Shown: positions 1,022-63,678 of the stretch, one piece after another
Position numbering within the stretch: the stretch's first letter is position 1
Layout of the letters: each line of letters opens with the position of its first letter
From: Mytilus californianus
Lineage: Eukaryota
DNA length: 64,000 bases
Direction of reading: 5' to 3'
Assembly (NCBI RefSeq): GCF_021869535.1
Contig: NW_026262593.1
Span: 21,266,001 to 21,330,000 of the forward strand
The notes under the pieces: generated by a model
What the model was told of the DNA's origin: nothing
The model's database searches: none
What the model saw: only the letters and a program-made list of their open reading frames with translations
Position numbers and translations under genes: made by a program

Positions 1022-1185
1022 TTTTGTGGTAGATGATTTAACAGCAGATAAAGTATATGTTGTTACTATGAATATATCAGTATGTCTAGAATCAGGAGGG
1101 GCATGTGAAGTGTTTACCAATGTATTCCAGGATCACAGGTTACCCAAAGCTGAATGTGATTATGATTCACAGTTTGTCATTTCTG
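1022..1185 (+). CDS. Host gene exon, type D
   Basis: ttcag|...|gtaag; phase 2-1; FVVDDLTADKVYVVTMNISVCLESGGACEV..LPKAECDY. Confidence 0.88.
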
Positions 1186-4100: not shown

Positions 4101-7100
4101 TTTTAAATTATGTTTAAAGAAATGCATATTTATAAAGGAAGACCAGTAAAAATATCTGCAAATGTTTTCATCTTTTTTTTTTACAAAAAAATCCATATGA
4201 AAGATTTGACACTATATTTTTATTAATTCTATTATAAAATAGATTAAGTTAGCACTATGGTAAATTTAAATGGGTAATTATGGTTGCCAACTCCATTGGA
4301 AATTTGAATTGAGATTATGACCATATCTTGAGGGAAAGAATTTTTTTGGGGGAAAAAGGGGGGGGGGGGGGGGGATAAAAAGAAATTGTGGGGGGCCAAT
4401 TTTTTCTCATTTCAGATTTCAGAAATTAAAAAGAATTATTCTTCAAATATTATTTTTTTTTCAAATTTCAAGAAGTAATCTTTAATTGCACAGTATGGCG
4501 CATTAGATTTGTAAAATCTTTGATCACATTTATTTATTTGTTATGCCGAATCTAACAGTGTATTTAGATTTTTAATTTTGGGTCCAGTTTTCAAATTGGT
4601 CTACATTAATGTCCAAAGGGTCCAAAATTAAACTTTGTTTGATTTTAGCAAAAATTGAATATATGAGGTTCTTTGATATGCTGAATCTAAACATGTATTT
4701 AGATTTTTGATTTTTGGCCCAGTTTTCAAGTTGGTCCAAATTGGGGTCCAAAATTAAACTTTGTTTGATTTCAACAAAAATTGAATATATGGGGTTCTTT
4801 GATATGCTGAATCTAACCATGTATTTAGATTTTTTATTTGTGGACCCCGTTATCTAATTGGTTCATATTGAGGTCAAAAGGGTCCAAAATTAAACTTTGT
4901 TTGATTTCATCTAAAATTGAATTATTGGGGTTCTTTGATATTCCAAATCTAACCGTGTATTTAGGTTTTTAATTTTGGGTCCTGTTTTTTAAATTGGTCT
5001 ACATTGAGGTCCAAAGGGTCCAAAATTAAACTTAGTTTGATTTTAACAAAAATTGAATTCTTGGGGTTCTTTGATTTGCTGAATCTAAACATGTGTTTAG
5101 ATTTTTGATTATGGGCCCAGTTTTCAAGTTGGTCCAAGATAGGGTCCAGTATTTAAACTTTGTTTGATTTCAACAAAAATTGAATATATGGGGTTCTTTG
5201 ATATGCTGAATCTAAACATGTATTTAGATTTTTGATTATGGGCCCAGTTTTCAAGTTGGTCCAAATTGGGGTCCAAAATTAAACTTTGTTTGATTTCAAC
5301 AAAAATTGAATATATGAGGTTCTTTGATATGCTGAATCTAACCATGTATTTAGATTTTTTATTTGTAGGCCCCGCTATCAAATTGGTTCATATTGAGGTC
5401 AAAAGGGTCCAAAATTAAACTTTGTTTGATTTCATCGATAATTGAATTATTGGGGTTCTTTGATATGCCAAATCTAACCGTGTTTTTAGATTTTTAATTT
5501 GGGTCCCGTTTTTTAAATTGGTCTTCATTGAGGTCCAAAGGGTCCAAAATTAAACTTAGTTTGATTTTAACAAAAATTGAATTCTTGGGGTTCTTTGATA
5601 TGCTGAATCTAAACATGTGTTTAGATTTTTGATTATGGGCCCAGTTTTCAAGTTGGTCCAAGTTGGGGTCCAAAATTAAACTTTTTTTGATTTCAACAAA
5701 AATTGAATATATGGGGTTCTTTGATATGCTGAATCTAACCATGAATTTAGAATTTTTATTTGTGGGCCCCGCTATCAAATTGGTTCATATTGAGGTCAAA
5801 AGGGTCCAAAATTAAACTTTGTTTGATTTCATCAAAAATTGAATTATTGGGGTTCTATGATATTCCAAATCTAACCGTGTATTTAGATTTTTAATTTTAA
5901 GTCCCGTTTTTTAAATTGGTCTACATTAAGGTCCAAAGGGTCCAAAATTAAACTTAGTTTGATTTTTAGCAAAAATTGAATTCTTGGGGTACTTTGATAT
6001 GCTGAATCTTAACATGTGTTTAGATTTTTGATTATGGGACCAGTTTTCAAGTTTGTCCAAGTTGGGGTCCAAAATTAAACTTTGTTTGATTTTAACAAAA
6101 ATTGAATATATGGGGTTCTTTGATATGCTGAATCTAACCATGTATTTTGATTTTGGACATTGGACCATAATAGGTAAATTAAAAAAATTCAAGTTCTTAG
6201 ACCACATTCTTTCTGTGTCAGAAACTTATGCTGTGTCAAATATTTAATAACAATCCAAATTCAGAGCTGTATCAAGCTTGAATGTTGTGTCCATACTTGC
6301 CCCAACTGTTCAGGGTTCGACCTCTGCGGTCGTATCAAGCTGCGCCCCAGCGAAGCATTTTATTTTTATAATGCATCAATTATAACTGTCATCAAACATG
6401 GATGTGTACCTGTTCAATGCTGTTGTACTATTTCATGTGCAGCTGGATCTTTATTTGAGCAGACTACATGAAGTTGTCTACACTTTGCTACTAGTTAACC
6501 ATTTGTGTACTAGAAATGTTGGTAAAAGATTCAACAGGGTATCTGAGAACATATTAAGAAGCAAAGTAGGGTAATATAAAAAGTAGGATATAAGATATAT
6601 AAAAACATGAAGCACCAAAACTGTGTAAATTTCTGATCGCTCGCTTGCATAAAATGCTTTTCATAGATTTTTTTTTAATATTTCAAAAATAATATCGCTC
6701 GCTAGTAAAAAAACCTTTCGCCTGCCAAAAAATGAAACTTTGAAAAAAAAACAAATAAAAAAATTTCGCTCTCTCGCTACCTTTTTTTACAGAAAGTGTC
6801 CGAAGAACTAGAAATTAATTTGTTGTGGCCTTATAAAGAAATTAATTTTCTGTTTTTTACTTCTGCAGCTTGTGAAGAATATGTAGATTTACCAGTGCTG
6901 CAATCTGGTACTATCTGTCATCTGTACAGTTCGTGTACTGGTGTCACTTGTTGTAGCAGCTTCCCAAGGATCAATAGGAATGTTAACACACAGTTAAAAC
7001 TGGATCCCTGTAACAGTAAAATGATCATTGGTATTGAGAAGTTTGAGATTACCATCAGCTTGTTTGGATATACATATGGGGAAGTCAAAAATGTAAAATT

Positions 7101-10100
7101 GCATGGAGTGATTGGTCTTGAGTAAGTACATATAGTACAGGAGAAATAGAGTTGTTTGATTCAGCTAGATAACTTTTTCAACATTTCATTCTGTTCCAGT
7201 ATTTCATGAGCATTCATAGTCAATATACTATTAGTAGCATCTTAGTTATATAGGGACAGATCACACAAATGCCAATAGATGGAACTTTTAAAGGTAAAAT
7301 TCAGATCCAGAATCCCTTAGCGGAAATAGGAGAGAATATATAGTAAATATATCACTTTTGAGGTACAATGGATAGGTTCTTCTTTGTAAATACAGCTGTT
7401 TCACAAACCATGCCTCTTTTGGGGAGATATATAATACTTTTGTTTACCTACTGGTTCCCAGCTATGATCTCTATGTTTCATCTTGGAGAGACATAACTTT
7501 GGAATGTTTCCAGTATAACTATACATGCATAGCAGTCATATTGAAATCTGTGGAAGACCCAAAGTGAAGGGAGGGGTAGTACAGAATTTTAGTATAAGTT
7601 AAATTCTGGGCATATAAATGTTGAAAATATGACGCCCAGCCCTATATTTTGACCTTTGAAAAAAAAAGGAGTGCATATGTGCTTTCCATTCTAGGATATA
7701 ATTTTTTAAGAAACTTCATAGAAAAAGTGGTAGTTTTAGCCAGAAAAGGAGTTCCTATGGGAAATTGCATTATCTATATTTACAGAATTGCAACCTATGT
7801 ATCAGAAAAATGCATTTTAAGTTTCTTTCACTAAAGAACCTTCAGCATTGACTGAATTGTTTAAGCATCTGAAAGCTTGGCCTGTATAAATGATATGCAA
7901 AGAATAAAGAAGAAAATGAAGAAAATATCAGTTTTTTTATCAATACAGTATACAAATATTTTTTTTCGTTGTGCATAAATGTTTCAAAATTTTGTTTTTG
8001 GTTTCAGATTCAAGATTGAAAACCTTGAGGAAGAAAGGAAATTTATAGTTGACCTAGAGATGAGTATATGTATGGAGACAAATGGAACATGTGAAATAAC
8101 TATCCCTGTCTTGATAAGTACAGCCCTACCAAAGGCACCATGTGATTGGAAGAATGATTATGTTCAATCAGGTAAGTGGAAATGAGGATGATTAAGCATA
8201 GAAAGTAAAAAATAAATGATATCAATTTCTGTGAACATGACACATGCTTCTGGAATAACTCTCATTACGACATATAAGGTCAAAGAATTGGAAAACAAAA
8301 TATTATAAAGTGTTTTAGAACATATGAAAAACAAAAAGGGCATAAGAAATAATAGCCAATAAATTAATTATTTGACTTCTCAACCCAAGGAAAATGTTTA
8401 AAAAGATCCAGATATTTAAAATTGTTTTTGCAATTTGCATCTCAAAGTGAGGTTAAAGGTTTTTTTAAATAATGCCTTATAATATATAAGAAATTATTTG
8501 TGATGCAGTAGAAAAGAAAAAAAAAAAAATGACAAAGCAGAGCTGTTACCAAGAGAAAACCTTTTAGTTTTTACTCAGTCATTGTTGTTTGAAAGTTATA
8601 ATTTCCTGTTAATGAATGAATCTATTTTTGTTTCAGATTTTTCATTCCTTGGTTTCCTGAATGAGAAAGGTATAGATGTTAATGATAATCTGGATACCAA
8701 TCAACTGTCTGCCTTGATAGAGAGGTTAGCCATTGGAGATTTCTTGATGGACACACAATGTAGTAGTTCTGCATCTCCCTACAGCGGACATTCAGACGGA
8801 TGGACTAATTGTAAGTTAGCCTGTGAATATTTACATTTTAGAAGTGTTTATAGAATGTTATATTGGCCTTTATATTATTTTTTTCCTGCTTTACATAATA
8901 TGTAATTTGTTGATATTACTTACTTGTGTCTGTTTATATCAATATTTTGATGTAGCTTTCTGGAATTTTAACAAAGAATTCTGCTGAAAGCTGTGCTAAG
9001 GAATGTCTTTTAACTGGCAAAAATTGGTACAAATTGGGGCAAAATTGCCCCTTTAATGAAATATATTTCAAATTTTCTCTGATTTTTAGAATCAAATGTT
9101 GAATCTTTGTACTTTGATAATAAAACATTGCAGTTTTGGTTTGAAATATATCCTTTTTATGGGTTATTCATCCAAGAATGACAATAATTTCAGTAAAATA
9201 GAAAAATTATACAAAATCTTGACTATTTATTTTACTTGTACATTCTAAGAAATAATATACTGCACAACTGTTCGCCAAAAAGATATTTAAACAGTTAGTG
9301 TATTTTGCGTTTATCTATGCACTTGCGACCAAGTCTGAAAAATCTCACTTATGATGTCATTTTAATGATGCCACTGTCAAATTGTGTCATCAAGGTTAGG
9401 ATAATATTCATATTGTCTGAATGCTTTTCTTCTGATGCTTAAGAATTGTGTTTAGCAGTTGTATCATACAAGGCCAAACAAACCCAGAATTGTACTTAGC
9501 AAAAATAAACTGCTCACAAAAATAAACCTCACTTTCCAGTGTAACATGTAATAATCACTGGTGATTGGATTATCATATATTCATAATCATATAATTACAT
9601 TACATGTATGTTTCATAATAACACATTTTTATACGCCCGTTTACGGGACGTATTATGGTATACCGTTGTTTTGATTGGCTGACAGCAATCTCGCGTAATT
9701 CTGAAAATAACCTTCTTTTCAAAATGAAATGTAACAATAAAGTACACAGGTGAATAAAGAAAACCTTGATAGAAATCGTGTTTTCATGATCCTAGTAAAA
9801 AAATGTAATTATAAGTATTGAATGCTTCTTTTAGTAATTTTATAGGGTTGTAAAAGCATTGACCGTGCGCACATTTTTAAAATGAAGCGCTTCTGCGCTT
9901 CATACAACATGTACTTCAGTCAATGCTTTTACACCCCAATGAATTTACAAAAAGAAGCATTCAATTCTTAAATATATTTTAGAGGCTAATTTTGTCTTTT
10001 TATATTGACAGTATGTGGACAGTTTATGGCAACTCTTCCCACTGTATCAGGCACTGTATGTAATGTTGGCAGTGATTGTACAACTGTCTACTGTTGTTTG

Positions 10101-28100: not shown

Positions 28101-30217
28101 ATACTTGAAACTTTTTACAATCTTAAAGTATCTCACTTATAATGCTTATTGGAAATTCCCAGTGCATTGTACTTAACTTTCATCTTTATAAAGGGAGTGG
28201 ATATTAAGGAAACATATTGCATAAGATACCACTAAAATGATGGAAGTGAAGTATTTTGTTATTCAAACACAGGAAAATGCTTGAAGGAGTTTAGGTTTTC
28301 TTAAAATTAAGTGTTTTTGGAAATTTCGTGAGAAAAACTTCCTGGATCTGTCTGTTTATAAAACACCCTTTTTATTACATTTGATTTTGCAGAATAAAAT
28401 TCAAAAGTCTATTAAGTAAAGAATTGTGGATTAGCTGATACATGGTTAGAAGTCTTATAAATATTCTATTTTGTTAAGAATACATAAGAAAATAGAAATT
28501 TGCTTTTGATTCTTGTCTCGACATAGGAATCCTGAGGTAACGACTTAAACTTTTTGTATACAGCTTTATATTTGAGAAGGTAGAAGACCTTGATGATTCT
28601 TAATTTGTATACAGATGCCTTATGTTATGGAGTTTTGGTCTGTCATACTATCAATGTCTTTGACCTCATTTTCATGGTTCAGTGATTGCTTAAAAAATCT
28701 ATAGGTTTTTTATCATGTGAATTTCTCACTTATTATGAGAATAATTATAATTGCAAGGGTCTTTATTACTTTGACCTTATTTTCATGGATCTTGATAATG
28801 TCAATTTTATAAGATATCTGTAGTTAAAGCTTGATCTTAAAGACTTTTAACGTAAAATTCAACCATAATCAGAAAAGCAGGTGGTACATCTCAGTACATG
28901 TATATGCACTCTTGTGGATGTAGGCTTTGTTTGGAGAAGATATAAATTCTGTATACAAAATTCACTTTTGAAATTAAGATTTTAACCATTATAAGAGTAT
29001 TATGCTGATATTTGGTTTGTAATTGTAGAATTAGAAGTACATGTATCGAAGCATATCATATGTGTGTTTTAATCTGATTTATGTACTTTTGACTTTACGT
29101 CTAAGGAACATAGAAAATAAAAGTTTTCTTCCTTCAGTCTTTAGTGTAGATCATGTTACTGAAAGTTGTGAAACATTTCTGATGAAAGGGGAGGGGGAGA
29201 TTATTAAAATGCTAGTCTTTCATATTATTGAAATAAATTGAAATGAATGTTTGATAATTAGCAATACACATTCTGACTGTTGACAGATGTCTTTTTATAT
29301 ATAAAGTTCTATCTAGTTCTATCTAGTTTCCTAATTCAAGGATTCAAAATAGTAAGACATTTTCCAAAATCAAGGACTTTACAATTAAAATTTCATATTA
29401 GTTCCAGAGAACTCCTGCCAGGTCAAGTTTTGCTTATTGTTAATTATACTCTTACTAAAGGGATGGGTATACAGGTTTATCTCTGTCAATGCATCAATCT
29501 GTCTGTATCACTTTTCTGTTGCATTTTTCTCAGCAGCTATTTGTCATAGATTTTTAATAAATGACACCAAGCTTCATCTTTTTATTCAATTTCATGTGTC
29601 ACGTTTTTAGTTCCTTCGATGTTCTTCTTCCTGTATGCCGAAATTTTAAAATTTCATACACATATATATGAGATGAAATTTTATTCACAATTAGTCACCA
29701 ACATTGAATGGGGGTACAGAAGTACATAGTGTATTGTTATGAAATTCCTGGTTTGTGTACATTTTACTAAAAAATGTGAGAACAAAGAAGAACATTTTTT
29801 TTTCTTGTTAAAATGTAAAGTTCCTTCAAACTTTTTAAAAATTACTTTTATTTTAGAATTATCTTATTTTTAACCCCTGTATTTTTTCTGATATTTCTAG
29901 AATGATTCTAGACACAAAATGAAAACTTAAACCAATGTTGAATATTCTAGCTAGTATAACCCATTATACTTGATTTGTATTTATAGCTTCTCTGTGAATT
30001 ATCTGATGTACAGTGGAATGTATGTTGTCAACATGACTGTCAGTATATATATATATAATTGATTTGTATTGATAGCTTCTCTGTGGATCTTATGTATAGT
30101 GGAATGTAAGTGGTCCACATGACTGTCAGTACATATATATATAATTGATTTGTATTTATAGCTTCTCTGTGGATCTTATGTACAGTGGAATGTATGTTGT
30201 CAACATGACTGTCAGTA

Positions 30218-30250
<33 letters not shown>

Positions 30251-54200: not shown

Positions 54201-57200
54201 AAGACTGTATGTCTATCTGCTGCTGTCTATTGGTTTTTATTTGATTGCTGTTTTCCCTTATGATTATCCTACTTTCTGTCGAGTTTCAACCTTTGCATTT
54301 AATTTTAAATATTTTTGTTTTTATTGAATTTGAACTGAACACTAACAAAATAATTAGTTGACACATATAAGAGTTTTTACTATACATATGGAAACTTACC
54401 AAGTTTTGGGCATGATCCACTTTCCACTTCTTTGGCAAGCATTGAAGTCAACAGCAGACAGGTACTAAACACAAACATTTGTAAATTTATCATGTTGAGC
54501 TTTTGGAACTGTGATGTGAACCATGCAGTTTAGCTATATTATACTTTCAGAATTCCTGCTATTCTAGGTCATAATGATGATATTGCATGTTTAACATTTG
54601 AACATATGTTCGGTATTCATTACACCAGTAAATAAAGTATCGAGTTTCGTTTCACGTTTTGAAAAAGGAAAGATTGTTCATTTACATTTGGTTGAAATTG
54701 TACTTGTTTTAAGACATTTTTTTAAATGATTTTTATTTTTTTTTCTCTGTCTGTCTGTTTGTCTGTCTGTCTGTTTGTCTCCAAAAGTAAAGGTAGGACC
54801 CTGATGAGATTTTGAACAGTTGTTGCACATATTAACATGTTCAATTGACAAATGAAGTATGGAAAAAAATAGGTTTTTTTTATAAATCATTGATTTTTAT
54901 ACCTACTTTTATGTTATGGCAAATCTTCAAAAGTATGAGTATATAGTACTATATGAAAAATGCCTTTTCCAGCAATTTTGTTCTTTCAATCAATACTTTG
55001 AATTGCAAATGGGGTTACACGTAGAGTGAAAACACATGCAACTTCTTGTTTATCTGTCAATACTGAATATCCCAGATGTTCCCATGTCTTAAGAGAAAAT
55101 GTTTGATGCCACATAGCAAAACTTTCGTCTGAATGGAGTCAATGTTCATGTAATTGTTGTTAATACTTGGTTCAAGTTATGCAGATTTCAAAATAGTTAA
55201 AAAGAATATGAACTATTCCTTTCTTTTTTCAGATTGTGCTGCTAACCTTGCATTGCCAACTTTATCAGACAAAGTTAATGGCCACATAACTACTATGTGT
55301 ACAGGTGTGGAAGGTTGTATAGAGAATGATTTGATTAAGAGGTCAATCCAATTCTCCCTTCTACTGGATCCCTGTTCAAACAGACTCAGTATCAGTATAG
55401 AGAGAGCAAGATACAACAGAACACTCGATGATTTTGAATATGGTATGTGATATTTGAATTATTGAAATATTTGACAAAATATTTTTAAACAAATAATGAT
55501 AACACAGAATTTTTGAAAAAATATTGGAAACCTGTCTAAACCAAACTCTGCATTTATCTAAATCTCAGTGTAGTAAATATTTTTTGGGGTTCTTATAATG
55601 CTATGATGTTGTCGTCGTCGTCCGAAGATATATTTGGTTTCCGTACAATAATTTTAGTTAAAGTGAATGCATCTCTATTAAATTTTACAAGAAGGTTCAA
55701 TACCACAAAAGGAAGGTTGGGATTGGTTTTGGGGGTTATTGTACCAACCATTTAGGAATTAAAGGCCAAAAAGGGGCCAAAAATAAGTATTTTTGTAGTT
55801 TCTGGACAATTACTTGTCTGTAAGTGTATGGATCTCTCTGACATTGTACCACTATGTTCCATATCACAAAGGGAAGGCTTACATGCAGGAATTAGGGGCA
55901 AAAAAAGGGGCAAAACAAGCATTTTTCTAGTTTCCAGACAATAACTTGTGTTTAAGTGTACTGATCTCTCTAAAATTGTACTACAAGGTTCCATACTACA
56001 AAGGAAAGGCTGGGCTTGAGTTTTGGGGTAATTGCTTCAGGGGGGGGTCAAAAAGTTGGGGGGGGGGGGGGGGGAAATTTTTTTTCCAATTTAAATTTTT
56101 TTGAATAGATTTTTAAGATCTTTGACAACATTTATTTTGTCTCAGAAACCTTGATTATGTCGAAAATTTGATGACAATCCAAATTCAGACAGTATCAAGT
56201 TTGAATATTGTGTCAAAATTTGCTCCAACTGTTCAGGGTTCGACCTCTGCGGTCGTATCAGGCTGCGCTCAGCAAAGCATTTTATCTGATTCATGGAGAA
56301 TTTACCCTATGACAGGTGTTAACTTTAAGACAGGCACTCAAAAGGGAGTTTAATCATTCAGAATCATAGTATTGAAAACATTTAGGTTCTCTTGTCCTTA
56401 AAAACCAACATGCAAATATAGAGAAGTTGGTTGCTATACACCTTATCGCTATTTGTCCGCCATACCTTGACATCATACAGGTTCCTGTCAAAGTTTGAGG
56501 TCACAATAGAAAAATCTGAGGCAAAAATGAAAAAGTGATTGTTGTATGACGTCAAAATTTCAAGCGGCGCAGATTCTCAGAGCAACCGGGGCAGATTTCC
56601 AAATAGTAATAAGGAGTATTGTAAACTGAAATACAAGACATACACTGAAAATTCTATTATTTTCAAAACCAATGTGGCTAAGGTTTCTGGCAAATTAGAA
56701 TTTAAAGTCCTGAAGTGGTTTGATTTAAAAAGGTTTGGCTGTAATATTCAAATAAAACATTTACAAATAACTATTGTTTCTGTTTGCTTATATATTTTCG
56801 AATTATAAAAGGTTGGTATATGTTATTTTCATTCAAGCATAAGCCTGTGACAATTTTGTTCTATTCATTTAAAGACAGGTATTCAAAACTTGAATATTGT
56901 TGCAGAATATAATCAAAAATAAGAAAGATTTAGAGGTAGTGTTGTCCTTCCTAATCCAGAACGGTTGTTCATATGTTTTATTCTAATGTAATGGCTTATT
57001 CAAGAAAAGGGGTTTACCATGACCATATTTGTACAAAACCAGATGTATTATTATAAAACATAAAAAATAATGAATATATTTTTTAAGAATAAGTTAAAAT
57101 CGGAAAATATGTGAAGAAATAACAAGCAAGATTTTCTTTAGAAATGTTTACAACAGAATATTCCATAAAATAATGATAATTTCTTTTTTGAAAAATCAAG

Positions 57201-60200
57201 TGTAAAAATAATTCCATATACCGAGTAAATATTTGTTGTGACTTCATATTTCATGTTCAATCTTTTCTTTTTGTAGGGGAAGATCATTACTACAATCTAC
57301 AAGGAATTGTCCGTCTCAAGTAAGTGTGTAATATAATGATTTAGGAAAAGTGCTAGAAAAACAGGTTGATATATAATAACTCATCAAAGATACCAGGCTT
57401 ATAATTTGGTAGGCTATTTATGTCTTTGGGATAAAAAAATAGTTGTGTGTCAAATTATTTAACATTTCATAAACAGTTCATTTACAGGAAATGAATGTAT
57501 CAAGGTATTTTATATTTTTATGCATATATAAGTGCTGCATCACTATGCTGGTGTTACTCTCTGGGAGAAAATTTCCACCAGCAGTTGCATGGACCAATAT
57601 GGTTGTAACAAGTGGCATGGATCCAATGGTTGTAAAAACATCAAAGATATCATCCCTTTGATTTAGTACGCCAGACACATGTTTCGTCTCTATAAAACTC
57701 ATAAGTAGCAGTAGGAAAGCCAAATGAAACATAAGAAATTTATGACAATTGAAAACCACTAATACTGAAAAATTTTGCGAAATACAACCAAGGCTATTTA
57801 GGAGTGAGGGTAGAAAACTTTAAAGGGCATTTAGTGTTTGGTATTTACGCCCCTTTTGGTTTTTATGCTCTCAAACCTTTTATATTGGCTTTCTTCACTT
57901 TTAGACAAGAGTCTACTGGATGAAGATTACTGCAGACACATATACATGTGTTGTGCACACAGATGTCATTTGTGTCTTTTATAGCAAAATTAAAGAAAAT
58001 AGACAGAAATTTGTTTTGCTAGAAATAGATATGGTGTGTAGAATGAGAATCTAGGGCTTTGTTTTATTATGGCCTTACTTATGAAGAGAGGCTAAAGATA
58101 CCAAATGGACATTCAATCTCATTAGTCCAACATTAACTGACAATACCATGGCTAAAAAAGAAACAAAAAGACAAACAACAGTAAACAAAACACTATTTAG
58201 AAAACTGAGGGCGGTACTTTGACCTATGATTGTTTACTTTTAACTTATTGTGACTTGGATGGAGAGTTGTCTCATTGGCACTCATACCATTTCTTCTTAT
58301 TTATTTATATGTAAAAACGTTTAATCCCACTGCAAATGTTTGCACCTGTCCTAAGTCAGGAATCTGATGTACAGTAGTTGTCGTCTGTTTATGTAGTTCA
58401 TACTTGTTTCTTGTTTTTCGTTTTAATATAGATTAGACCGTTGGTTTTCCAGTTTGAATGGTTTTACACTAGTAATTTTTGGGGCCCTTTATAGCTTGCT
58501 GTTCAGTGTGAGCCAATGCTCCGTGTTGAAGGCCGTACCTTGACCTATAATGGTTTACTTTTATAAACTGTAACTTGTATGGAGAGTTGTCTCATTGGCA
58601 CTCATACCACATCTTCCTATGTCTATGAACAACATGAACCCCACCAAACACCAGGGGTAATTTTAGGTGCTCCAAAAGGGTAAGTAAATCCTGCTGCACA
58701 TGTTGCACCTATCTGTTGCACATATAAGTTCAAACCCAGTGATAAGTCTTAGCTTACAAAAGATCAGTCTGAAATATCTTGTATGTTCCAGCAGTGGTTC
58801 CCTAGTTCTGATGGCATTTACTAGACATTTGATCCAGTAATGTTGGAGTAACTGGATAAGCTAAAATGTTACTGGACTGAAAAAAAATTTAAAAATTCTA
58901 TTCCTTCTATCCATTTCACTTAACCATTGTTCACTATGTTCATCTTTTTCACATAACACAAAATCCATTTTTTTCACTGCCCCCTAGATGAATTTCAGAC
59001 CAAATATTGTTTATCTATGTGTGTGGCTCGTCATGTTTTTGTTTACATGGATCAATGTTAAAATCAGCACTTTCATCAGAATTAATCATTCTTCTTTAAA
59101 AGGGTGATGAGGATGCTGACAGTTACCCAGGCTTAATTTTTTCACTTTTCTACCTTAATTGTAGGTAGAAATGATGCAAGACACATCAATGTTTTTATTT
59201 TTGGACTGTCATCTGTCAGACCATTTGTAACCTATGCAATAAGACAAAATAAATAAAAAAAAAAAGTCTATTGACAGATTAATTTAGAATTATTTTATTG
59301 AAAAAATTTATAGTTTACACCTGGTCCAAGAAGCAACAGAAAATTAATGGACCAGTCCAAAAATAACCATACTTTTGCCAATGTCCAACATAACTTTGAA
59401 ATCTCTGATGTTCACATAAAACCTTTATTTCAGATATAATATAGAGGATCTGCATACAGAAGGTTATTATCTGTTAAATGTGGTTGTCTATTTTTCCTAT
59501 GAGACATATAGTTCCTATACACCTGAGAACACCTTTACAATCTTTGAGAACACCAAGTTACCTAAAAGAATATGTAGCTGGGATCAGGGATTCAAAACCT
59601 CAGGTATGGATACACCATTTAAACTATTTTGATTAACTTTTTTTTCAATATCTGTTTTTTGAAGAGGACTTTTGAAGTTGTAATATTCGCTGCTATTGTT
59701 GTAAATTTCAGACTGTGTATAAATATAGTTTGTATAAAGTGAGTAACCCCCTTAAGAACTTATAAGTGATATATGTTTAAATGAAAATGTAAGGGTCAAG
59801 GCAGGAACTAAATGAAGGTTTATATTTGTGAAATGTTAATCCAAAGTCATATATGATCAATTTGTATGATTTGCAAACTTATTTCCATTATTTTCAGGTT
59901 TCTCTAAGACCCAGTGGTATGCAGACAATGGAATACCAGACGGACAAGTTCTGCCTGACTGGGCAGCATCATCATTCCTGAATGACCTTCACATTGCTGC
60001 TTATTTACAGACAGAACAATGTGGTCAGACTGATCTTCAATATACAGATGGATGGAATCTTGGTGAGTTTTTGAATTTGTTTATTTTTATATACATTTGT
60101 CTATACTTCTAGAAAAGATCTAAACATAATTGTTTAGCCACAAAGACTCAGTGTTAATAACTTTTAGGAAAATATGGAGACTATAGAATTATAAATATTT

Positions 60201-63200
60201 TTTTAATGGTTTTCATTTGAAATATTTTACTGAAATTGATTGATGATATCTCACTATTGAAATTAGGACTACTCTGTATTCATTAATATCTGAGGATACC
60301 AATTTCATGGTTTTCGTCTATAAATTTTCTATTGGCTGTTATGCAGACTTTTGGAAATCACAAAATCAAATATCCATTTAAATTAATTTTTCCTCAATCC
60401 ATGAAAATTGGTAACCTTAAAAACAAATGATGGTTTTATCACAGCAAACTTGATTGATGATTGCTAAACATCAAAGAGGCTCCTCATGGGGGTGTCCAAG
60501 TAATCGCATAATCACAATTTTTTTGCCAATATAAACGTAATCATTAATTATTTTTTTAAATAAGATAATCAAATAATCAAAAATTCAGTCCAAGATTATC
60601 AAATAATCAAATAATCATGAAGTATTTGGTCTGGTTATCAAATAATCACTATAAGAACGGTCCAATAATCACATAATCAAAAACCCCATGAGGAGACTCA
60701 TCAAATCAAACTTGAATAAAAAAAAAACTAGTTAAGATTTATTGAATCATTGAATTATCAAAGTAGCTGTTTAACAGACAGATTTTGTCTCCAATGTCTT
60801 TAAATTTGGATGCCTCAAATCTAATGAGTACAGTTGTATATATGATACTTTTATTTAGCATTACCTTAACTCCTTACCTTGAAGTTTTCTGTAAGGTTTG
60901 AGGACCTTTATATGAGTAGAACCAAATATATTTGATATACAAATGTTTTGCAGGTTGTACAAAGACTGTCAGTTTACCTAACATCACAGATTCCACAAAA
61001 TGTCACCTGACCTCAGCTTGTACTGCAGTAGAATGTTGTACTGTAATCGACTTCCTTTCAAGGTCATTCAGGCTATATCTACATATTGACCCCTGTACAC
61101 AAATATTGTATCTTGAAATTGAACGTTTCAATAGAAATGTTTCTTTAATTGGTTACATGGATGGTAAGCACAATGATGTTATTTGTTCAGGGTAATATTG
61201 TAAATTCAGAAATTATTGGAGGTTTTATTTTATTTTTGTGAATAATGTGACTGGGTGAGTATGCAATTATAAGAACTTGCATTCTGATATCTGATACATA
61301 TATCTATATGCAGATTTTCCTGAAATCGCAATAACTAATATCGCTTTTTTGTCCAATCTTTAAAAATCACAATGATTTCTAAATTTACTGTAATTCACTG
61401 TGCCTTCTAAGTTGAATGTAATTGTCCCAATTCAGTTAACTTTATTTTTTCAAATTTTATAATTTGAATTTGAACTGTTGCCTTATTTTTCTAATGGAAT
61501 TGATTGCGATAAAAATCATGCAGAAGAAATACTTACTTAATGTCTTAGTTATTCACAGACAAGTTCATGATAGGTAATCAATGCTAAGCCTAATGATTAC
61601 AAACTTAAAATCAGAAAATCGTTTTTTGTAACTTACTTAATTCAATGTCAGTACTATCAATCACTTTGACTTTGCGAGGAACAACTGCAATAAATGCAGT
61701 GTTCCGTTGTCTTTAAATTTTTCAAGTACATGATATCATTTTTGTGTCATGAATTGATACACCATATGTTTTTTTTTTCCACATTTTATTACAATTCTAG
61801 ATAATTATAAGTAAAACATTGACATGTGTTTGTTTTAGGAACCAAGAAACAGTTTGCACTTGTTGGATCAGTTATGATTGAGTGAGTGTTGTGTTAAATT
61901 ATAACAATCTTTGTTGTTCACTACCATAAAAAAAGGCTGTTTTTACAAAAATTCATAGAAAACATGTTCTCTCTAAGGATCTGTTAGTGTTTTCTTGAAA
62001 ATTATGTTTTATTTGGTGTCTTTATAGACTTTTTTTTTTGTGTCTTTATAGACTTCTTTTGATTTAAGTCTCTAGTTTTGTTTAATATCAATTTACTATA
62101 CTTTCACTGACTCTTATATTTGATTCATGTTATAGAATATTTAAAAAATGGCTTTGAGGTATCATTTAATGATACATTTGTGTAATAAGTACTTAAATTT
62201 TACATCTCATTATATATTTCTAGCTACGTGATAGAAGATATACCAGGAGAGAGTATGTACCTGGTCAGTATGAATATATCTTACTGTTACGAGGATAGAC
62301 AGCCATGTTATATGGTCACTACAGTGTTTGACAATACCAGATTACCTAAAGATCTGTGTGAATGGAAAACTGACTACCATATTCCAAGTAAGTCAAATGT
62401 TAGGTGCTTACTGATTATTAATGTTAATCATTATGTACATTTTACAATATTTCATTCAACAAAATTATTGTCTCAGAATCGTAACAGAAAAGAATCATAT
62501 CTACAAATAGACTGAAAAACTATGCCAGCAAGTCACATTAAGATCCTCCCTTTAAATCTAGGGTAGGGAGTATGTGAGCTTGCTTACTAACGGTTTAATT
62601 CTTTAACTTATCAATATTTGGTGAATAGTTTATTTGGATTATACAGAGTTTTGTCACATTATAATTAGTATTGTAAAATTTTTATCCACTACATTTATTA
62701 TTTTTGTTTACAGATTTCTCATTTGAAACATGGCAAGGAGATCAAGGATTGATAATAGGTGACCCTTTGTCGATGTGGGCAGAACTTTTATTATACGAAC
62801 AAACTGGTCTGTCTCCTTATTTACAAGATAGTATGTTTCAATGTAGTAGAAACAGTGCCAAGTTTAACTCATCTATTGCTGGTGGATGGATTAATGGTAG
62901 GTGTTGTCATTTATATTTTAAGGTATCTGTTAAGTAATAAATGTCATGCCCTGTTGAACTTTTGATAGTAAACCCTTATAGGTAAAAGAAAATTTGATTG
63001 CTCCTTCAATATTTGAAAAAAATATAAAAGATACTATGTACCTTATGTGTAATAGAATAATTAATAATATATTTGGAAGAATAATTAACTTTTACATTTG
63101 TTTTAAATATCAGTCTGATCAAGAAGTATAGTAATTTCATCAACTTATTGAATTTACTTAGAATTGTATCCTTAGAATGTAAACTATTAGTTGGAGTTGT

Positions 63201-63678
63201 TTTGTGCACTACTTATTATACAAATATTAAAAAATAAAAAAAATATTAATAGATCATTTAATGAAATCCCTGTGAATGTTTAGGAAGAACATATAATAGT
63301 TTCACAACTTTTTATATGTTTTAATTTATGTGATGTGGGTCGTGTAATGGTCACTCTGTTATCACATTTTTCACATTAATGAAAACATCACACATGTTTC
63401 TGATTTTCTGGTACAGCAAAAATATGGCAGAATAAAATGATTGTGTTATTGTTTTTAAGAATGTAGCTTGGATACCACCATACAGGATCTACCTAGCAGT
63501 TACAGTGATATAACATGTCATGTGACATCAAGCTGTACGGAAATTGAGTGTTGTGTTGACTCTGTGAAACTTCGTAAACCTTTCCATGTGGTTGTCAAAT
63601 TAGATCCATGCAAGTTTGTCATCAATGTAGGAATCGAAAACTTTCAATTCATATTGGCCATGGCAGACTATACATTTG
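1022..63678 (+). CDS. Giant multi-exon gene (47 exons in window, open at both ends) encoding tandem ~195-aa cysteine-rich repeats; probably extracellular; function unknown
   Basis: 47 AG/GT-bounded exons join into one open frame (~7,643 nt). Exon types recur in the order B(-C)-D-A with constant phases (A|B 1, B|C 1, C|D 2, D|A 1). Recurring motifs: CxxxxxC..xCC..DPC..IGIEK..DYxFG, IEDL..Y.V.MN.S.C.E...C..LPK..CxW, FS...W...C...GW. Confidence 0.92.
1382..1558 (+). CDS. Host gene exon, type A
   Basis: ttcag|...|gtaag; phase 1-1; FSLSEYLDEK..MDDICDQ..DNGWNR. Confidence 0.88.
1506..1925 (+). repeat. 88-bp tandem array of exon end + donor (4 donors, 5th copy degenerate)
   Basis: Units start at 1506, 1594, 1682, 1770, 1856; AG|GTAAG after 1558, 1646, 1734, 1822. 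Confidence 0.9.
1977..2560. mobile_element. Non-autonomous element with ~158-bp internal repeats
   Basis: 'ttgtaagcactct' recurs at about 2052, 2210 and 2370; (CTGT/GTGT)-like head. Confidence 0.5.
3200..3490. mobile_element. Interspersed SINE/MITE-like repeat (relatives at ~17095-17160, 25185-25335, 25760-25970, 38850-39030, 40295-40485, 58335-58622)
   Basis: Shared blocks 'ggggcct..atagc.gactat', 'gttgtctcattggca.tcataccacatct' and 'cctgacttggtacag' in both orientations. Confidence 0.7.
3491..6357 (+). mobile_element. Helentron/HINE (DINE-1-like) non-autonomous element carrying a satellite
   Basis: 5' hairpin tatacgaccgcaaaa/tttgtggtcgtata, (CGT)n microsatellite, 3' subterminal tgcggtcgtat + GC hairpin, T-rich flanks; other copies at 48867-51401 and 55607-56280. 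Confidence 0.8.
4545..6150. repeat. Satellite of ~126/~136-bp units (~12 copies) inside the HINE
   Basis: 'ggtccaaaattaaactt' at about 4619, 4745, 4881, 5017, 5143, 5270, 5407, 5543, 5668, 5802, 5938, 6067. Confidence 0.9.
6869..7121 (+). CDS. Host gene exon, fused type B+C
   Basis: tgcag|...|gtaag; phase 1-2; CEEYVDLP..ICHLYSSCTGVTCC..DPCNSKMIIGIEK. Confidence 0.92.
8008..8171 (+). CDS. Host gene exon, type D
   Basis: ttcag|...|gtaag; phase 2-1; FKIENL..ICMETNGTCEI..LPKAPCDW. Confidence 0.92.
8637..8810 (+). CDS. Host gene exon, type A
   Basis: ttcag|...|gtaag; phase 1-1; FSFLGFLNEKG..DTQCSS..DGWTN. Confidence 0.92.
9812..9970. mobile_element. Palindromic MITE (~55-bp arms)
   Basis: taagtattgaatgcttcttt...aaagaagcattcaattctta and aaaagcattgacc...gtcaatgctttt. 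Confidence 0.75.
10012..10264 (+). CDS. Host gene exon, fused type B+C
   Basis: gacag|...|gtaag; phase 1-2; CGQFMATLP..VCNVGSDCTTVYCC..EPCLFRLSVGIDK..DYEWG. Confidence 0.92.
10750..10919 (+). CDS. Host gene exon, type D
   Basis: aatag|...|gtaga; phase 2-1; FTVRDL..ICRESDTETTPCGV..LPKLSCDW. Confidence 0.9.
11282..11458 (+). CDS. Host gene exon, type A
   Basis: ctaag| (AAG acceptor) ...|gtaag; phase 1-1; FQGLTTWL..EPSCDQ..GGVKN. Confidence 0.82.
11765..12020 (+). CDS. Host gene exon, fused type B+C
   Basis: tacag|...|gtaag; phase 1-2; CGTPVSVP..VCTVSADTCTGLDCC..NHCYQDITVGLE..DYTFG (absent from the ORF track). Confidence 0.92.
12069..12862. mobile_element. TA-flanked MITE (TIR tactgtaaattcagaaatt), interrupted by a foldback element
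   Basis: Degenerate left TIR tacagtcaatttcgaaatt (15/19) and right atttctgagtttacagta. Confidence 0.65.
12158..12742. mobile_element. Foldback MITE with ~165-bp terminal inverted repeats
   Basis: aggacaaggtacgataaggcct...ggtgaggtgagggggtaaa mirrored by tttacccccctcacctcacc...aggccttatcgtaccttgtcct. Confidence 0.88.
13212..13372 (+). CDS. Host gene exon, type D
   Basis: ttcag|...|gtaaag; phase 2-1; YKIEDF..FCLETGSCEF..FPKKICTW. Confidence 0.9.
13306..15610 (+). repeat. 27-copy 84/86-bp minisatellite made of exon end + splice donor
   Basis: Unit = last 67 nt of exon 13212-13372 + gtaaagataatttatag(ag); 27 unit starts counted from 13306 to 15529. Confidence 0.95.
16466..16639 (+). CDS. Host gene exon, type A
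   Basis: ttcag|...|gtaag; phase 1-1; FSLDQWS..LPQCNRS..NGWIK. Confidence 0.92.
17188..19105. repeat. ~550-bp direct duplication (17188-17738 and 18561-19105), each holding a TA-flanked MITE (17266-17736, 18639-19103)
   Basis: TIR ggtgtaataccacca/tggtggtattacacc in both copies; the same ~75-bp left flank precedes both. Confidence 0.85.
19129..19338 (+). CDS. Host gene exon, type B
   Basis: ttcag|...|gtaag; phase 1-1; CNDTEVVP..TCRLKSDCAAISCC..DDCERKIYIGIEK. Confidence 0.92.
19645..19687 (+). CDS. Host gene 43-nt exon, type C
   Basis: tacag|...|gtgag; phase 1-2; TWHEFSLVKTIRI. Confidence 0.85.
20033..20196 (+). CDS. Host gene exon, type D
   Basis: tttag|...|gtatg; phase 2-1; YNVYNL..SCWERYGSCAW..FKKQMCAS. 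Confidence 0.88.
20665..20826 (+). CDS. Host gene exon, type A
   Basis: ttcag|...|gtaag; phase 1-1; FSLTTWA..KNTCDF..NGWNN. Confidence 0.92.
21472..21730 (+). CDS. Host gene exon, fused type B+C
   Basis: ttcag|...|gtagg; phase 1-2; CSSTINNLP..SCYISDVCTDVRCC..DGC..DYTFG. Confidence 0.92.
22372..22541 (+). CDS. Host gene exon, type D
   Basis: tccag|...|gtagg; phase 2-1; YTIDDLP..VCTTNGAPCEY..LPRPSCLPHW. Confidence 0.92.
23057..23230 (+). CDS. Host gene exon, type A
   Basis: ttcag|...|gtaaat; phase 1-1; FTKEQWK..KPRCNR..DGWVN. Confidence 0.9.
23682..24470 (+). repeat. 10-copy 80-bp minisatellite made of splice acceptor + exon start
   Basis: ttacag|ac.gtacactagg at 23696, 23776 ... 24416 with exact 80-bp period. 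Confidence 0.95.
24416..24625 (+). CDS. Host gene exon, type B (uses the last acceptor of an 80-bp array)
   Basis: tacag|...|gtgag; phase 1-1; CTLGVSPG..VCLIGSKCSEVSCC..DPCEFTLLIGVEK. Confidence 0.9.
24938..24980 (+). CDS. Host gene 43-nt exon, type C
   Basis: ttcag|...|gtaata; phase 1-2; KSYELDLGGIYRV. Confidence 0.85.
26917..28167 (-). CDS. Nested antisense C1q domain-containing gene 1 (exons 28167-28137, 27997-27860, 27338-26917; ~196 aa; short coiled coil + globular C1q head)
   Basis: Last exon has gC1q motifs (VMFYVTL, VKFNEIQFDEGANFN..DGVF...SGVFMF, V.EGDHVWI, SSFMSILI*). Middle 138-nt phase 1-1 exon is heptad-like (MDLMENSLEKMEQRILNLTNEVTKL). First exon (MHWEFPISII) is tentative. AATAAA on - strand at 26836-26831. 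Confidence 0.85.
28515..28915. mobile_element. Degenerate non-autonomous interspersed element
   Basis: tgtctcgac..cctgag head and 'aagcaggtggtacatctcag..tgcactcttgt' tail; internal 'tttgacct.attttcatgg' repeats. Confidence 0.5.
30382..30860 (+). mobile_element. HINE/pearl-like non-autonomous element
   Basis: (GTCC/GTCT)n head, two 168-bp core repeats (30463, 30631), 3' hairpin gagatgg-ctc-ccatctc (30831-30847), then ctagt. Confidence 0.75.
30861..32289 (+). mobile_element. ~535-bp tandem repeat (2.6 copies) with hammerhead motifs; Penelope pLTR- or retrozyme-like
   Basis: 'ttggt.ttaaattaatagttaagatcc' at about 30870, 31410 and 31945; a unit fragment also at 30361-30381. Confidence 0.8.
31839..31882 (+). 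ncRNA. Minimal type I hammerhead ribozyme (intact); mutated copy at 31304-31347
   Basis: ACATCA-CTGAAGA-GACA(TTAAT)TGTC-GAA-ATCCGGAT-A-TGGTGT: stem I, CUGANGA core, stem II, GAAA, palindromic stem III, AUA cleavage triplet. Confidence 0.8.
32508..32671 (+). CDS. Host gene exon, type D (uses the last acceptor of a repeat array)
   Basis: gatag|...|gtaac; phase 2-1; FSVDDL..ICWSSGQDCQF..LPKHTCDT. Confidence 0.88.
33415..33576 (+). CDS. Host gene exon, type A (lacks its cysteine)
   Basis: ttcag|...|gtaag; phase 1-1; FSYISWLND..NGWND (absent from the ORF track). Confidence 0.88.
34067..34279 (+). CDS. Host gene exon, type B
   Basis: ttcag|...|gtaag; phase 1-1; CELGMVELP..NCTLQPHCTAIDCS..DPCHAR. 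Confidence 0.92.
34553..34694. repeat. Long hairpin (~65-bp arms)
   Basis: taaataacacata..gggtgatagagcagattgttacccc..ttgtcaac / gttgacaa..ggggtaacaatctgatctatcaccc..tatgtgttattta. Confidence 0.85.
35191..35233 (+). CDS. Host gene 43-nt exon, type C
   Basis: tttag|...|gtaag; phase 1-2; DLWQVWLRGIVRI. Confidence 0.88.
35521..35687 (+). CDS. Host gene exon, type D
   Basis: tttag|...|gtatg; phase 2-1; FTINNL..VCFESSGACEV..LPKKTCDF. Confidence 0.92.
36487..36660 (+). CDS. Host gene exon, type A
   Basis: tttag|...|gtaaa; phase 1-1; FSLEAMI..EQSCNR..DGWMK. Confidence 0.9.
37265..37480 (+). CDS. Host gene exon, type B
   Basis: aatag|...|gtgag; phase 1-1; CTTQS..TCYTLPDCTGFQCC..DACKYK. Confidence 0.92.
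37785..37827 (+). CDS. Host gene 43-nt exon, type C
   Basis: ttcag|...|gtaag; phase 1-2; TQDKFYINGVFKM. Confidence 0.88.
38210..38373 (+). CDS. Host gene exon, type D
   Basis: ttcag|...|gtaata; phase 2-1; YQIEELP..VCLEANADCAV..KPTCTS. Confidence 0.9.
39192..39347 (+). CDS. Host gene exon, type A (alternative in-frame end at 39404)
   Basis: tccag|...|gtaagt (or |gtaata after 39404); phase 1-1; FSVTDWK..EPQCII..GWQSG. Confidence 0.88.
39293..39406 (+). repeat. 57-bp tandem duplication across a donor site (in frame, 19 codons)
   Basis: aagtacatgaagg...tcaggaggt twice, one mismatch (ATC/ACC). Confidence 0.95.
39948..40157 (+). CDS. Host gene exon, type B
   Basis: tacag|...|gtaag; phase 1-1; CPLTID..TCQVTSSCTGVKCC..NPCDQS. 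Confidence 0.92.
40731..40773 (+). CDS. Host gene 43-nt exon, type C
   Basis: tacag|...|gtgag; phase 1-2; SLQKFYMENVVRV. Confidence 0.88.
41905..42068 (+). CDS. Host gene exon, type D
   Basis: ttcag|...|gtaag; phase 2-1; YVIYDL..ICYESSAPCEL..KKPCQW. Confidence 0.92.
42081..42291. mobile_element. TA-flanked (Tc1/mariner-type) MITE
   Basis: tactgtaaattcaaaaattattgc...gcaataatttctgaatttacagta. Confidence 0.85.
42878..43051 (+). CDS. Host gene exon, type A
   Basis: tacag|...|gtagg; phase 1-1; FSESGWR..ATPCQG..NGWKD. Confidence 0.92.
43495..43704 (+). CDS. Host gene exon, type B
   Basis: ttcag|...|gtaag; phase 1-1; CSASNLENLP..KCYIPATCSFIRCC..DSC..DYQWG. Confidence 0.92.
44156..44198 (+). CDS. 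Host gene 43-nt exon, type C
   Basis: tacag|...|gtaag; phase 1-2; VVQSMDLFGLLTM. Confidence 0.88.
44582..45320. mobile_element. Non-autonomous TIR element with 6-bp TSD TATTTA
   Basis: TIR catacctgccaacc/ggttggcaggtatg; TATTTA at 44576-44581 and 45321-45326. Confidence 0.88.
45528..45691 (+). CDS. Host gene exon, type D (lacks first two cysteines)
   Basis: tacag|...|gttag; phase 2-1; FAIENL..LSYESAGPVEA..KKQCDW. Confidence 0.88.
46837..47004 (+). CDS. Host gene exon, type A
   Basis: ttcag|...|gtataa; phase 1-1; FSLNTYL..DEMCNQ..QSWTQ. Confidence 0.88.
47021..47216. mobile_element. TA-flanked MITE, same family as 42081
   Basis: tactgtaaattcagaaattgttgc...gcaataatttctgaatttacagta. Confidence 0.88.
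47596..48770 (-). mobile_element. Internally deleted, decayed hAT transposon with 6-bp TSD TATGTT
   Basis: TIR catagttgccaac/gttggcaactatg. Minus strand encodes a hAT C-terminal dimerisation motif LSKLAKAILVLPKSNSDCERAFSIIKK (~47990-47900) and an N-terminal remnant KRKRYVCTYQKS* with stops. Confidence 0.88.
48867..51401 (+). mobile_element. HINE copy (same family as 3491-6357) with a second element inserted
   Basis: Same 5' hairpin, (CGT)n and 3' tgcggtcgtat + hairpin. Confidence 0.82.
49565..51125 (+). mobile_element. Second HINE-like family with ~503-bp tandem core repeats
   Basis: 5' gctcacct / 3' aggtgagc subterminal inverted repeat, 3' hairpin aggctc-ttga-gagcct, T-rich flanks; 'tacaaaaatcttct' at about 49659, 50166, 50666. 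Confidence 0.82.
52718..54493 (-). CDS. Nested antisense secreted globular-head C1q gene 2 (exons 54493-54400, 53851-53786, 53112-52718; 184 aa)
   Basis: Signal-peptide-like MINLQMFVFSTCLLLTSMLAKEVES; GT/AG phase-1 introns; gC1q motifs RPAFTATL, IKYDTVILNQGKGYSPKTGIFTATKAGLYLIS, LEKGDQVSV, SYFSAVYIA*; AATAAA on - strand at 52697-52692. Confidence 0.93.
53153..53634. mobile_element. MITE with 6-bp TSD TATATT in intron 2 of nested C1q gene 2
   Basis: TIR gagggtggtaaa/tttaccaccctc; internal (T)CGTG repeats; TATATT on both flanks. Confidence 0.82.
55233..55442 (+). CDS. Host gene exon, type B (two cysteines replaced by Gly)
   Basis: ttcag|...|gtatg; phase 1-1; CAANLALP..VNGHITTMCTGVEGCI..DPCSNR. 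Confidence 0.92.
55607..56280 (+). mobile_element. 5'-truncated HINE copy
   Basis: (GTC)n + body matching 3560-3860 and 48920-49540; same 3' end. Confidence 0.78.
56437..56618. mobile_element. Small TA-ended MITE
   Basis: tacaccttatcgctattt / aaatagtaataaggagta imperfect TIR. Confidence 0.5.
57277..57319 (+). CDS. Host gene 43-nt exon, type C
   Basis: tgtag|...|gtaag; phase 1-2; EDHYYNLQGIVRL. Confidence 0.88.
58085..58750 (-). mobile_element. Cluster of degenerate SINE-like fragments with nested insertions
   Basis: Minus-strand 'gcagcaggatttacttacccttttggagcacc' body at 58640-58740, tail at 58085-58205, interrupted by copies of the 3200-type repeat. Confidence 0.45.
59434..59603 (+). CDS. 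Host gene exon, type D (lacks first two cysteines)
   Basis: ttcag|...|gtatg; phase 2-1; YNIEDL..FSYETYSS..LPKRICSW. Confidence 0.9.
59898..60062 (+). CDS. Host gene exon, type A
   Basis: ttcag|...|gtgag; phase 1-1; FSKTQWY..TEQCGQ..DGWNL. Confidence 0.92.
60476..60699. mobile_element. MITE with 6-bp TSD ATCAAA and internal ATAATC repeats
   Basis: TIR gag(g/t)ctcctcatgggg, 15/16 match; ATCAAA at 60470-60475 and 60700-60705. Confidence 0.82.
60954..61163 (+). CDS. Host gene exon, type B
   Basis: tgcag|...|gtaag; phase 1-1; CTKTVSLP..KCHLTSACTAVECC..DPCTQI. Confidence 0.92.
61196..61392. mobile_element. Degenerate MITE, same family as 42081 and 47021
   Basis: tattgtaaattcagaaattattg...atttctaaatttactgta. 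Confidence 0.72.
61839..61881 (+). CDS. Host gene 43-nt exon, type C
   Basis: tttag|...|gtgag; phase 1-2; TKKQFALVGSVMI. Confidence 0.88.
62224..62387 (+). CDS. Host gene exon, type D
   Basis: tctag|...|gtaag; phase 2-1; YVIEDIP..YCYEDRQPCYM..LPKDLCEW. Confidence 0.92.
62714..62896 (+). CDS. Host gene exon, type A
   Basis: tacag|...|gtagg; phase 1-1; FSFETWQ..MFQCSR..GGWIN. Confidence 0.92.
63460..63678 (+). CDS. Host gene exon, type B (gene continues beyond the window)
   Basis: tttaag| (AAG acceptor needed for phase and first Cys) ...|gtaag; CSLDTT..TCHVTSSCTEIECC..DPCKFVINVGIE..DYTFG. Confidence 0.85.

Follow-up and report, generated by a model that had tools for sequence, protein, structure and literature searches.

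An unnamed ten-cysteine repeat in a very large gene of the mussel Mytilus californianus, and its possible role as the stalk of a giant membrane-anchored protein

A stretch of 64,000 nucleotides from the genome of the mussel Mytilus californianus (contig NW_026262593.1, here C13, positions 21,266,001-21,330,000; 31% G+C, zero N), hereafter called the window, makes up the central fifth of a single, very large gene in which a cassette encoding a ten-cysteine repeat has been multiplied about 34 times. The gene extends over about 320 kb, from an ATG at -162,625 to at least +157,282, with positions counted from the window's first base. Judged from the sequence, its product would carry, in this order, a signal peptide, a vitellogenin-type module of the large lipid transfer protein (LLTP) family, an M23-like stretch, a SAP motif, about 34 repeats, a region of some 3,600 residues, EGF-like modules and a transmembrane helix. 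In the reading that we favor, and to which we assign a probability of roughly 55%, this product is a single membrane-anchored giant whose repeats form a long, stiff and covalently linked stalk.

One hidden Markov model (HMM) per class of coding piece (A, C and D) was used to search all six frames of the window. The scan found 13 A-type, 13 C-type and 13 D-type pieces, all of them plus-strand and arranged as C D (A C D)x12 A, which makes 12 full and two partial repeats. The A-type piece contains six cysteines and ends in IGIEK..DY.FG, the C-type piece follows the pattern Y.IEDL...Y.V.MN.S.C...C...LPK..C.W, and the D-type piece the pattern FS...W...LL...YL...C...GW. Between A and C lies a short exon B of 43 nt (....F.L.G...), which is fused to A in repeats 1, 2, 3 and 5 and is a separate exon in the remaining eight. 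From the HMM matches and the splice sites placed around them, 47 plus-strand exons were assembled between positions 1022 and 63678:

1022..1558 (+), partial repeat 0 (repeat 17 of the gene): C 1022-1185, D 1382-1558; HMM, AG/GT borders, phases 2 and 1
6869..8810 (+), repeat 1: fused A+B 6869-7121, C 8008-8171, D 8637-8810; ten cysteines
10012..11458 (+), repeat 2: A+B 10012-10264, C 10750-10919, D 11291-11458; HMM, splice borders
11765..16639 (+), repeat 3: A+B 11765-12020, C 13212-13372, D 16466-16639; HMM, splice borders
19129..20826 (+), repeat 4: A 19129-19338, B 19645-19687, C 20033-20196, D 20665-20826; HMM, splice borders
21472..23230 (+), repeat 5: A+B 21472-21730, C 22372-22541, D 23057-23230; HMM, splice borders
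24416..33576 (+), repeat 6: A 24416-24625, B 24938-24980, C 32508-32671, D 33415-33576; D lacks cysteine 10
34067..36660 (+), repeat 7: A 34067-34279, B 35191-35233, C 35521-35687, D 36487-36660; A lacks cysteine 5
37265..39347 (+), repeat 8: A 37265-37480, B 37785-37827, C 38210-38373, D 39192-39347; HMM, splice borders, X8 contig
39948..43051 (+), repeat 9: A 39948-40157, B 40731-40773, C 41905-42068, D 42878-43051; HMM, splice borders, X8 contig
43495..47004 (+), repeat 10: A 43495-43704, B 44156-44198, C 45528-45691, D 46837-47004; lacks cysteines 7 and 8
55233..60062 (+), repeat 11: A 55233-55442, B 57277-57319, C 59434-59603, D 59898-60062; lacks cysteines 2+4 and 7+8
60954..62896 (+), repeat 12: A 60954-61163, B 61839-61881, C 62224-62387, D 62714-62896; HMM, splice borders
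63460..63678 (+), partial repeat 13 (repeat 30 of the gene): A 63460-63678; HMM, splice borders

Every one of the 47 exons is bordered by AG on its 5' side and GT on its 3' side, and the intron phases are consistent throughout: phase 1 in front of A and at the A/B and C/D junctions, phase 2 at the B/C junction. The coding sum of 7,634 nt corresponds to 2,544 residues free of stops; both the start and the stop of the gene lie outside the window. The A exon of partial repeat 0 is found 1,126 nt upstream of the window, and the C and D exons of partial repeat 13 just beyond its other end, at +64,736 and +65,904. Identity between repeats is only 22-48%, with the ten cysteines retained. Since both ends of the cassette are in phase 1, its duplication leaves the reading frame intact. 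A preliminary description of this DNA, made from its letters, had arrived at the same exon count and coordinates (47 exons without a frameshift, about 2,550 residues, 12 complete and two partial repeats, no start or stop in 64 kb), and its repeat of about 195 residues with ten cysteines is recovered by the HMMs as A-(B)-C-D units.

The organization of the whole gene was followed in 200 kb of upstream and 100 kb of downstream DNA. Thirty-four A-type exons, all on the plus strand and interspersed with C and D exons, occupy the region from -91,745 to +78,861. Exons from -162,595 to -83,542 are collinear with residues 8-1599 of a protein of the freshwater mussel Potamilus streckersoni (P0004; 31-63% identity), residues 8-1176 of which correspond to the putative head, encoded by upstream exons on the same strand. 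The first exon has its ATG at -162,625 and its product begins with MDQLRSLYGIVCVILWTFVLNEA, a signal peptide according to inspection by eye and a hydropathy scan; it is followed by KFIRFKSGYEYEYKF, the type of start seen in vitellogenin-type proteins and in P0004. The Vitellogenin_N family (PF01347, Pfam cut-off 24 bits) matches P0004 with 34 bits and the amphioxus protein XP_078664147.1 (P0155, Branchiostoma) with 44.9 bits. In P0004 it is succeeded by an M23-peptidase-like stretch, a SAP motif and then the repeats, and P0155 has the same domain order. In the mussel gene, too, an M23-peptidase-like stretch (L001:2017-2196) and a SAP motif (L002:6315-6458) stand between head and repeats, upstream of the window, an arrangement thus kept in Potamilus and Branchiostoma. 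Both motifs are unexpected in an extracellular protein.

On the other side of the repeats, exons from +78,840 to +155,886 are collinear with residues 3201-6861 of a Sinanodonta woodiana protein (P0151; 35-70% identity), and the same region is collinear with the C-terminal half of the amphioxus protein P0012, so that some 3,600 residues after the repeats are conserved down to amphioxus; in the relatives this region gives Laminin_G_3, PAN, fn3 and cadherin-like matches. The exon +156,896..+157,282 encodes two EGF-like cysteine patterns (sub-threshold in Pfam, E about 1e-3) and then, by eye and by hydropathy scan, a hydrophobic helix of 22 residues followed by RWKRRE. The N-terminal signal peptide and the single transmembrane helix on the C-terminal side, both recognized in this way, are those of a type I membrane protein. 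Because the collinear relatives overlap and the run of same-strand exons is unbroken, we read all of these exons as one gene, with a product estimated at about 11-12 thousand residues (roughly 1,600 + 33 x 197 + 3,700). The suggestion of an extracellular, disulfide-bonded protein in the preliminary description is supported by the signal peptide, the EGF-like modules, the one transmembrane helix and the pairwise loss of cysteines described below, and its mention of vitellogenin-like N-termini in some huge invertebrate proteins by the Vitellogenin_N matches in the two relatives and the collinear exons upstream in the mussel gene.

The LLTPs vitellogenin, apolipoprotein B, apolipophorin II/I and MTP are secreted or reside in the lumen of the endoplasmic reticulum, and they reach up to about 4,500 residues. 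The mussel protein resembles them in having a signal peptide followed by an F-x-x-G-x-E-Y-x-Y start, and its relatives that carry the repeat, in Potamilus and Branchiostoma, have Vitellogenin_N above the Pfam cut-off. In contrast to these proteins, it has about 10,000 more residues and a transmembrane helix, and it repeats an unnamed domain some 34 times; no VWD or DUF1943 match was seen in the comparison. We know of no description of a membrane anchor or of this repeat in any of the named LLTPs. As far as known, a vitellogenin-type head joined to a membrane anchor and to some 10,000 other residues is new for LLTPs; if the architecture is true, the protein would be among the largest of animals and, to our knowledge, the first vitellogenin/apoB-like protein of the lipid-transfer type with a membrane anchor.

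The repeat itself belongs to a large family. A profile of the 13 A exons of the window, compared with 1.84 billion representative proteins, matched 751 proteins at E<=1e-3 (clustered at 50% identity; best E-value 3e-239, with 14 matched stretches), including spliced models with up to 14 repeats. With this number of matches and such a best score, the pattern is not a chance one. The nine genera of the relatives fall in four phyla: Mytilus (M. edulis, M. galloprovincialis and M. coruscus), Potamilus, Sinanodonta, Mya and Argopecten, and, beyond bivalves, the limpet Patella, the nemertean Lineus, the flatworm Macrostomum and the amphioxus Branchiostoma. All relatives that were looked up are called "uncharacterized" or "hypothetical" by their sources, and a literature search returned no paper on the repeat family.

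For comparison with known domains, 81 full units were cut from 15 database proteins; 61 have exactly ten cysteines, and 60 were aligned (alignment A4). Pfam gave no match at E<=1 for ten single exons of the window, no family in the repeat region of whole many-repeat relatives, and, among the 60 full units at E<=1, 20 families that were each matched by one unit only, with E-values above 0.01; these scattered hits are noise. Within the repeat there was no match to Pfam VWD, ZP-N, EGF, TSP1, VWC, LDLa, Sushi/CCP or WAP. The A4 profile found zero matches at E<=10 among all PDB sequences, and Foldseek searches of PDB with models of a single unit and of two consecutive units gave no usable TM-score, the matches of the two-unit model being beta propellers with TM<=0.15. 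A word-indexed protein search with A4 returned a single fragment of 101 residues, as its length filter conceals the long relatives. By these searches the domain, which the preliminary description could not recognize, has no named relative.

We consider it decidedly unlikely that the repeat is a very divergent member of a named family, with DUF4773 (Pfam PF15998) the first candidate and a FAIM-like or VWD-like sandwich the next. DUF4773 comprises small secreted proteins, mostly of arthropods, and is annotated also in oyster and octopus (PMC12064177, PMC11431876). It is the sole named family that recurs as a lead for the repeat and the nearest one in language-model features (0.77 for exons A+B, 0.78 and 0.75 for the full unit) and in predicted shape in ESM Atlas (TM 0.38/0.40 over 102 aligned residues, root-mean-square deviation 4.3), all of these values being below the trust thresholds; like the repeat, it is an animal family with no function assigned. 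However, the DUF4773 HMM (gathering threshold 27 bits) misses every repeat: it matched none of the 60 full units at E<=1 and nothing in the whole relatives, and in a six-frame scan of the M. californianus genome its ten matches fell on contigs C143 and C2, at loci other than those of the repeat family. In addition, the DUF4773 proteins of the atlas cluster have about 190-214 residues and are not arrays. A distant link to DUF4773 is possible, but membership of that family is not observed. The FAIM N- and C-terminal domains (PDB 3mx7 / 2kw1) likewise had no sequence match to A4 in the PDB search at E<=10, nor was a FAIM family of Pfam found among the 60 units. As to the modular, disulfide-rich giants of the cell surface and the matrix that are built on VWD-C8-TIL (MUC2, FCGBP and VWF), the repeat has no sequence match to VWD, C8 or TIL and shows another cysteine pattern, and in contrast to these proteins the mussel cassette is a fixed unit of three or four exons with phase 1-1 borders.

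Structure was predicted for database fragments of two proteins, P0005 of M. edulis and the M. californianus paralog P0002. Residues 835-1033 of P0005, the counterpart of window repeat 2 (which is 86-93% identical to P0005 residues 836-1034), were folded with alignment A4 to a model with a mean predicted local distance difference test score (pLDDT) of 84.6 and a predicted TM-score (pTM) of 0.66, with nine strands in residues 15-129 and then three short helices in residues 146-179. Two consecutive units of P0002 (residues 292-687) gave pLDDT 90.3 and pTM 0.63, and the border between them was modelled at about 90. In these models the repeat is predicted to be a nine-stranded beta sandwich with short helices, and the linkers between units are two or three residues long.

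Each of the ten cysteines is kept in 92-100% of the 60 units, and losses tend to be pairwise. Among 258 A-type pieces, 19 lack both C2 and C4 and six lack one of the two; among 181 C-type pieces, nine lack both C7 and C8 and eight lack one of them. C6 and C9 are missing jointly in one case and singly in none. In the window, C7+C8 are lacking in repeats 10 and 11, and C2+C4 in repeat 11 as well. This paired loss therefore points to C2-C4, C6-C9 and C7-C8 as putative disulfides, with C1-C3 probably joined by elimination. A further pairing appears to cross the border between repeats. C10 is absent from exon D of repeat 6 (33415-33576) and C5 from exon A of the following repeat 7 (34067-34279); such a joint loss of C10 in one unit and C5 in the next occurs in two cases in the gene, the second of them farther upstream, while C10 and C5 of the same unit show no joint loss and ten discordant cases. 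The simplest explanation would be a bond from C10, in the helical tail, to C5 in the sandwich of the neighboring repeat, and from this we infer either a covalent chaining of neighbors or a structural domain that would start at exon D.

In the proposed mechanism, some 34 disulfide-rich sandwich units with short linkers would make up a stiff rod some 100 nm or more in length, in which inter-unit disulfides may chain the units together. On such a stalk, a head that binds lipid or patterns would stand well away from the cell surface, as would the other binding modules. The multiplication of the repeat would have been allowed by its phase 1-1 exon cassette. The short linkers and the confidently modelled unit border favor a rod, and the same two features argue against the strongest competing reading, in which the repeats have diversified as binding units that serve immune or pattern recognition, or else adhesion, within a multivalent cell-surface receptor where each of about 34 diverged copies presents another surface. 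We regard the latter as unlikely. It draws on the low identity of repeats that nevertheless keep their scaffold, on companion modules that bind elsewhere (the LLTP head, M23-like, LamG and PAN), and on the expansion and turnover of the family described next; against it, the repeats of M. californianus are 85-95% identical to those of the M. edulis ortholog P0005.

The genome scanned comprised 1.65 Gb in 175 contigs, in agreement with the published M. californianus genome of 1.65 Gb (PMC9710001). Exon A of repeat 1 matched more than 413 candidate places in it, grouped in about 15 loci on contigs C13, C132, C143 and C88. These paralog loci include C13 at 20.92-20.96 Mb (minus strand) and 21.77-21.90 Mb (plus strand), with about 12 others. 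Two of the loci, neighboring ones on C13 of which one is inverted, are 93% and 89% identical to repeat 1 of the window, which points to recent segmental duplication around the gene; the expansion, in which some copies differ by as little as 7-11%, also fits the binding-unit alternative. About the first six repeats of Mytilus correspond one-to-one to those of the freshwater mussels, in the same order and with 43-57% identity, and the later ones are without a clear partner. Therefore part of the array is old, and part has either diverged beyond recognition or been multiplied separately. The absence of one-to-one correspondence in the later repeats fits the binding-unit alternative as well. An old amplification under purifying selection, as the preliminary description had it, agrees with how little identity the repeats share, with frames and splice sites that are intact and with the conservation in M. 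edulis, with the qualification that the one-to-one correspondence to freshwater mussels is limited to those early repeats.

Transcription was checked by mapping four sequencing runs (X5-X8) to window positions 34050-40049. Runs X5 and X6 cover introns and are therefore genomic DNA. In the RNA-type run X8 of M. californianus, exon bins are covered and intron-only bins are not, and consecutive parts of one X8 contig of 1,849 nt fall on 38210-38367, 39186-39345 and 39946-40049, representing exons 8C, 8D and 9A spliced together; the offsets of 6 and 2 nt from the modelled borders come from letters (TTCCAG and AG) that can be placed to the left or to the right of the junction. Further X8 contigs have their ends at the borders of exon 7A. 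The gene is therefore transcribed and has these junctions as modelled. The remaining junctions are supported by the sequence and by the M. edulis model CAG2252210.1 (P0005), with 85-95% identity along the exons.

These observations bear on whether there is a working gene at all. The tandem copies of exon fragments in several introns, and the splitting of family paralogs into small models in RefSeq, could be taken as signs of a decaying array, a transposon-borne family of open reading frames or an artefact of picking open frames. Such an explanation is very improbable and already close to refuted, in view of the 47 open exons (all 47 with canonical splice sites and matching phases), the spliced RNA contig of X8, the orthologs and homologs in nine genera of four phyla and the ten cysteines kept in 92-100% of the aligned units.

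Several points weigh against a membrane-anchored giant with a rod-like stalk. No single transcript or database protein spans head, repeats and tail, and the mussel's own head exons, when searched singly, give zero Pfam matches. The inter-repeat disulfide rests on two cases, in units that are mutually related. Strong divergence of the repeats and a large expansion of the family would also fit binding modules. Finally, the only raw-read RNA run, X7 (about 6% sampled), has almost zero reads on the exons; this scarcity may mean that expression is low or limited to certain tissues.

The general kind of protein described here, a giant, modular and disulfide-rich protein of the cell surface, is already familiar. 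The domain is without a Pfam model, a structure or a paper, and its family of at least 751 database proteins (50% clusters) in several phyla is unnamed. The repeat is also a clear example of how a phase 1-1 exon cassette has been multiplied, about 34 times within one gene and to several hundred copies in one genome. For mussel biology, it points to an unstudied and expanded family of giant surface proteins. More tentatively, and with doubt prevailing, we suggest that the members of the family in molluscs, nemerteans, flatworms and amphioxus could be membrane-anchored giants of 6,000-12,000 residues, with a lipid- or microbe-binding head on a covalently chained rod of the new domain, and that the multigene set of the mussel could be a main part of its cell coat or of its surface immune sensing.

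A named model of the domain would correct the current annotation, in which RefSeq and GenBank models of the family (P0002, P0020, P0159, P0010 and P0030) are split into "uncharacterized" proteins of 229-1,753 residues. The RefSeq M. californianus models P0002 (XP_052081234.1), P0020 and P0159 were considered as representing this locus and rejected, all three being paralogs. One M. galloprovincialis fragment (P0031) has been named after TDRD9, and the M. edulis model P0005 translates copies from intronic minisatellites as protein in its residues 61-775.

The intronic minisatellites of the gene consist of an exon edge together with its splice site, so that each copy is a possible decoy splice site. 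The following were found in the window:

1506-1868, 88 bp x4: end of an exon D plus donor
13295-15610, 86 bp x27 with 94% identity: last 78 nt of exon C of repeat 3 plus donor; begins inside exon C and lies in the C/D intron
23675-24467, 80 bp x10: acceptor of exon A in repeat 6 with the first 52 nt of that exon, which is itself the last copy
29965-30229 and 32319-32469: intronic copies of the 5' part of exon C in repeat 6

Rfam gave no family at the gathering score in the window and none at E<=1 in 30800-32400. Two intron stretches, 34250-34850 and 38650-39050, reach a word depth of up to 1.8 million in the DNA runs and also attract reads of the RNA run; they resemble transcribed dispersed repeats of high copy number. 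Right after the donor of exon D of repeat 8, positions 39347-39403 hold an in-frame second copy of the last 19 or so codons (KYMKEPQC.IASPGWQSGG), a tandem duplication that offers a second donor.
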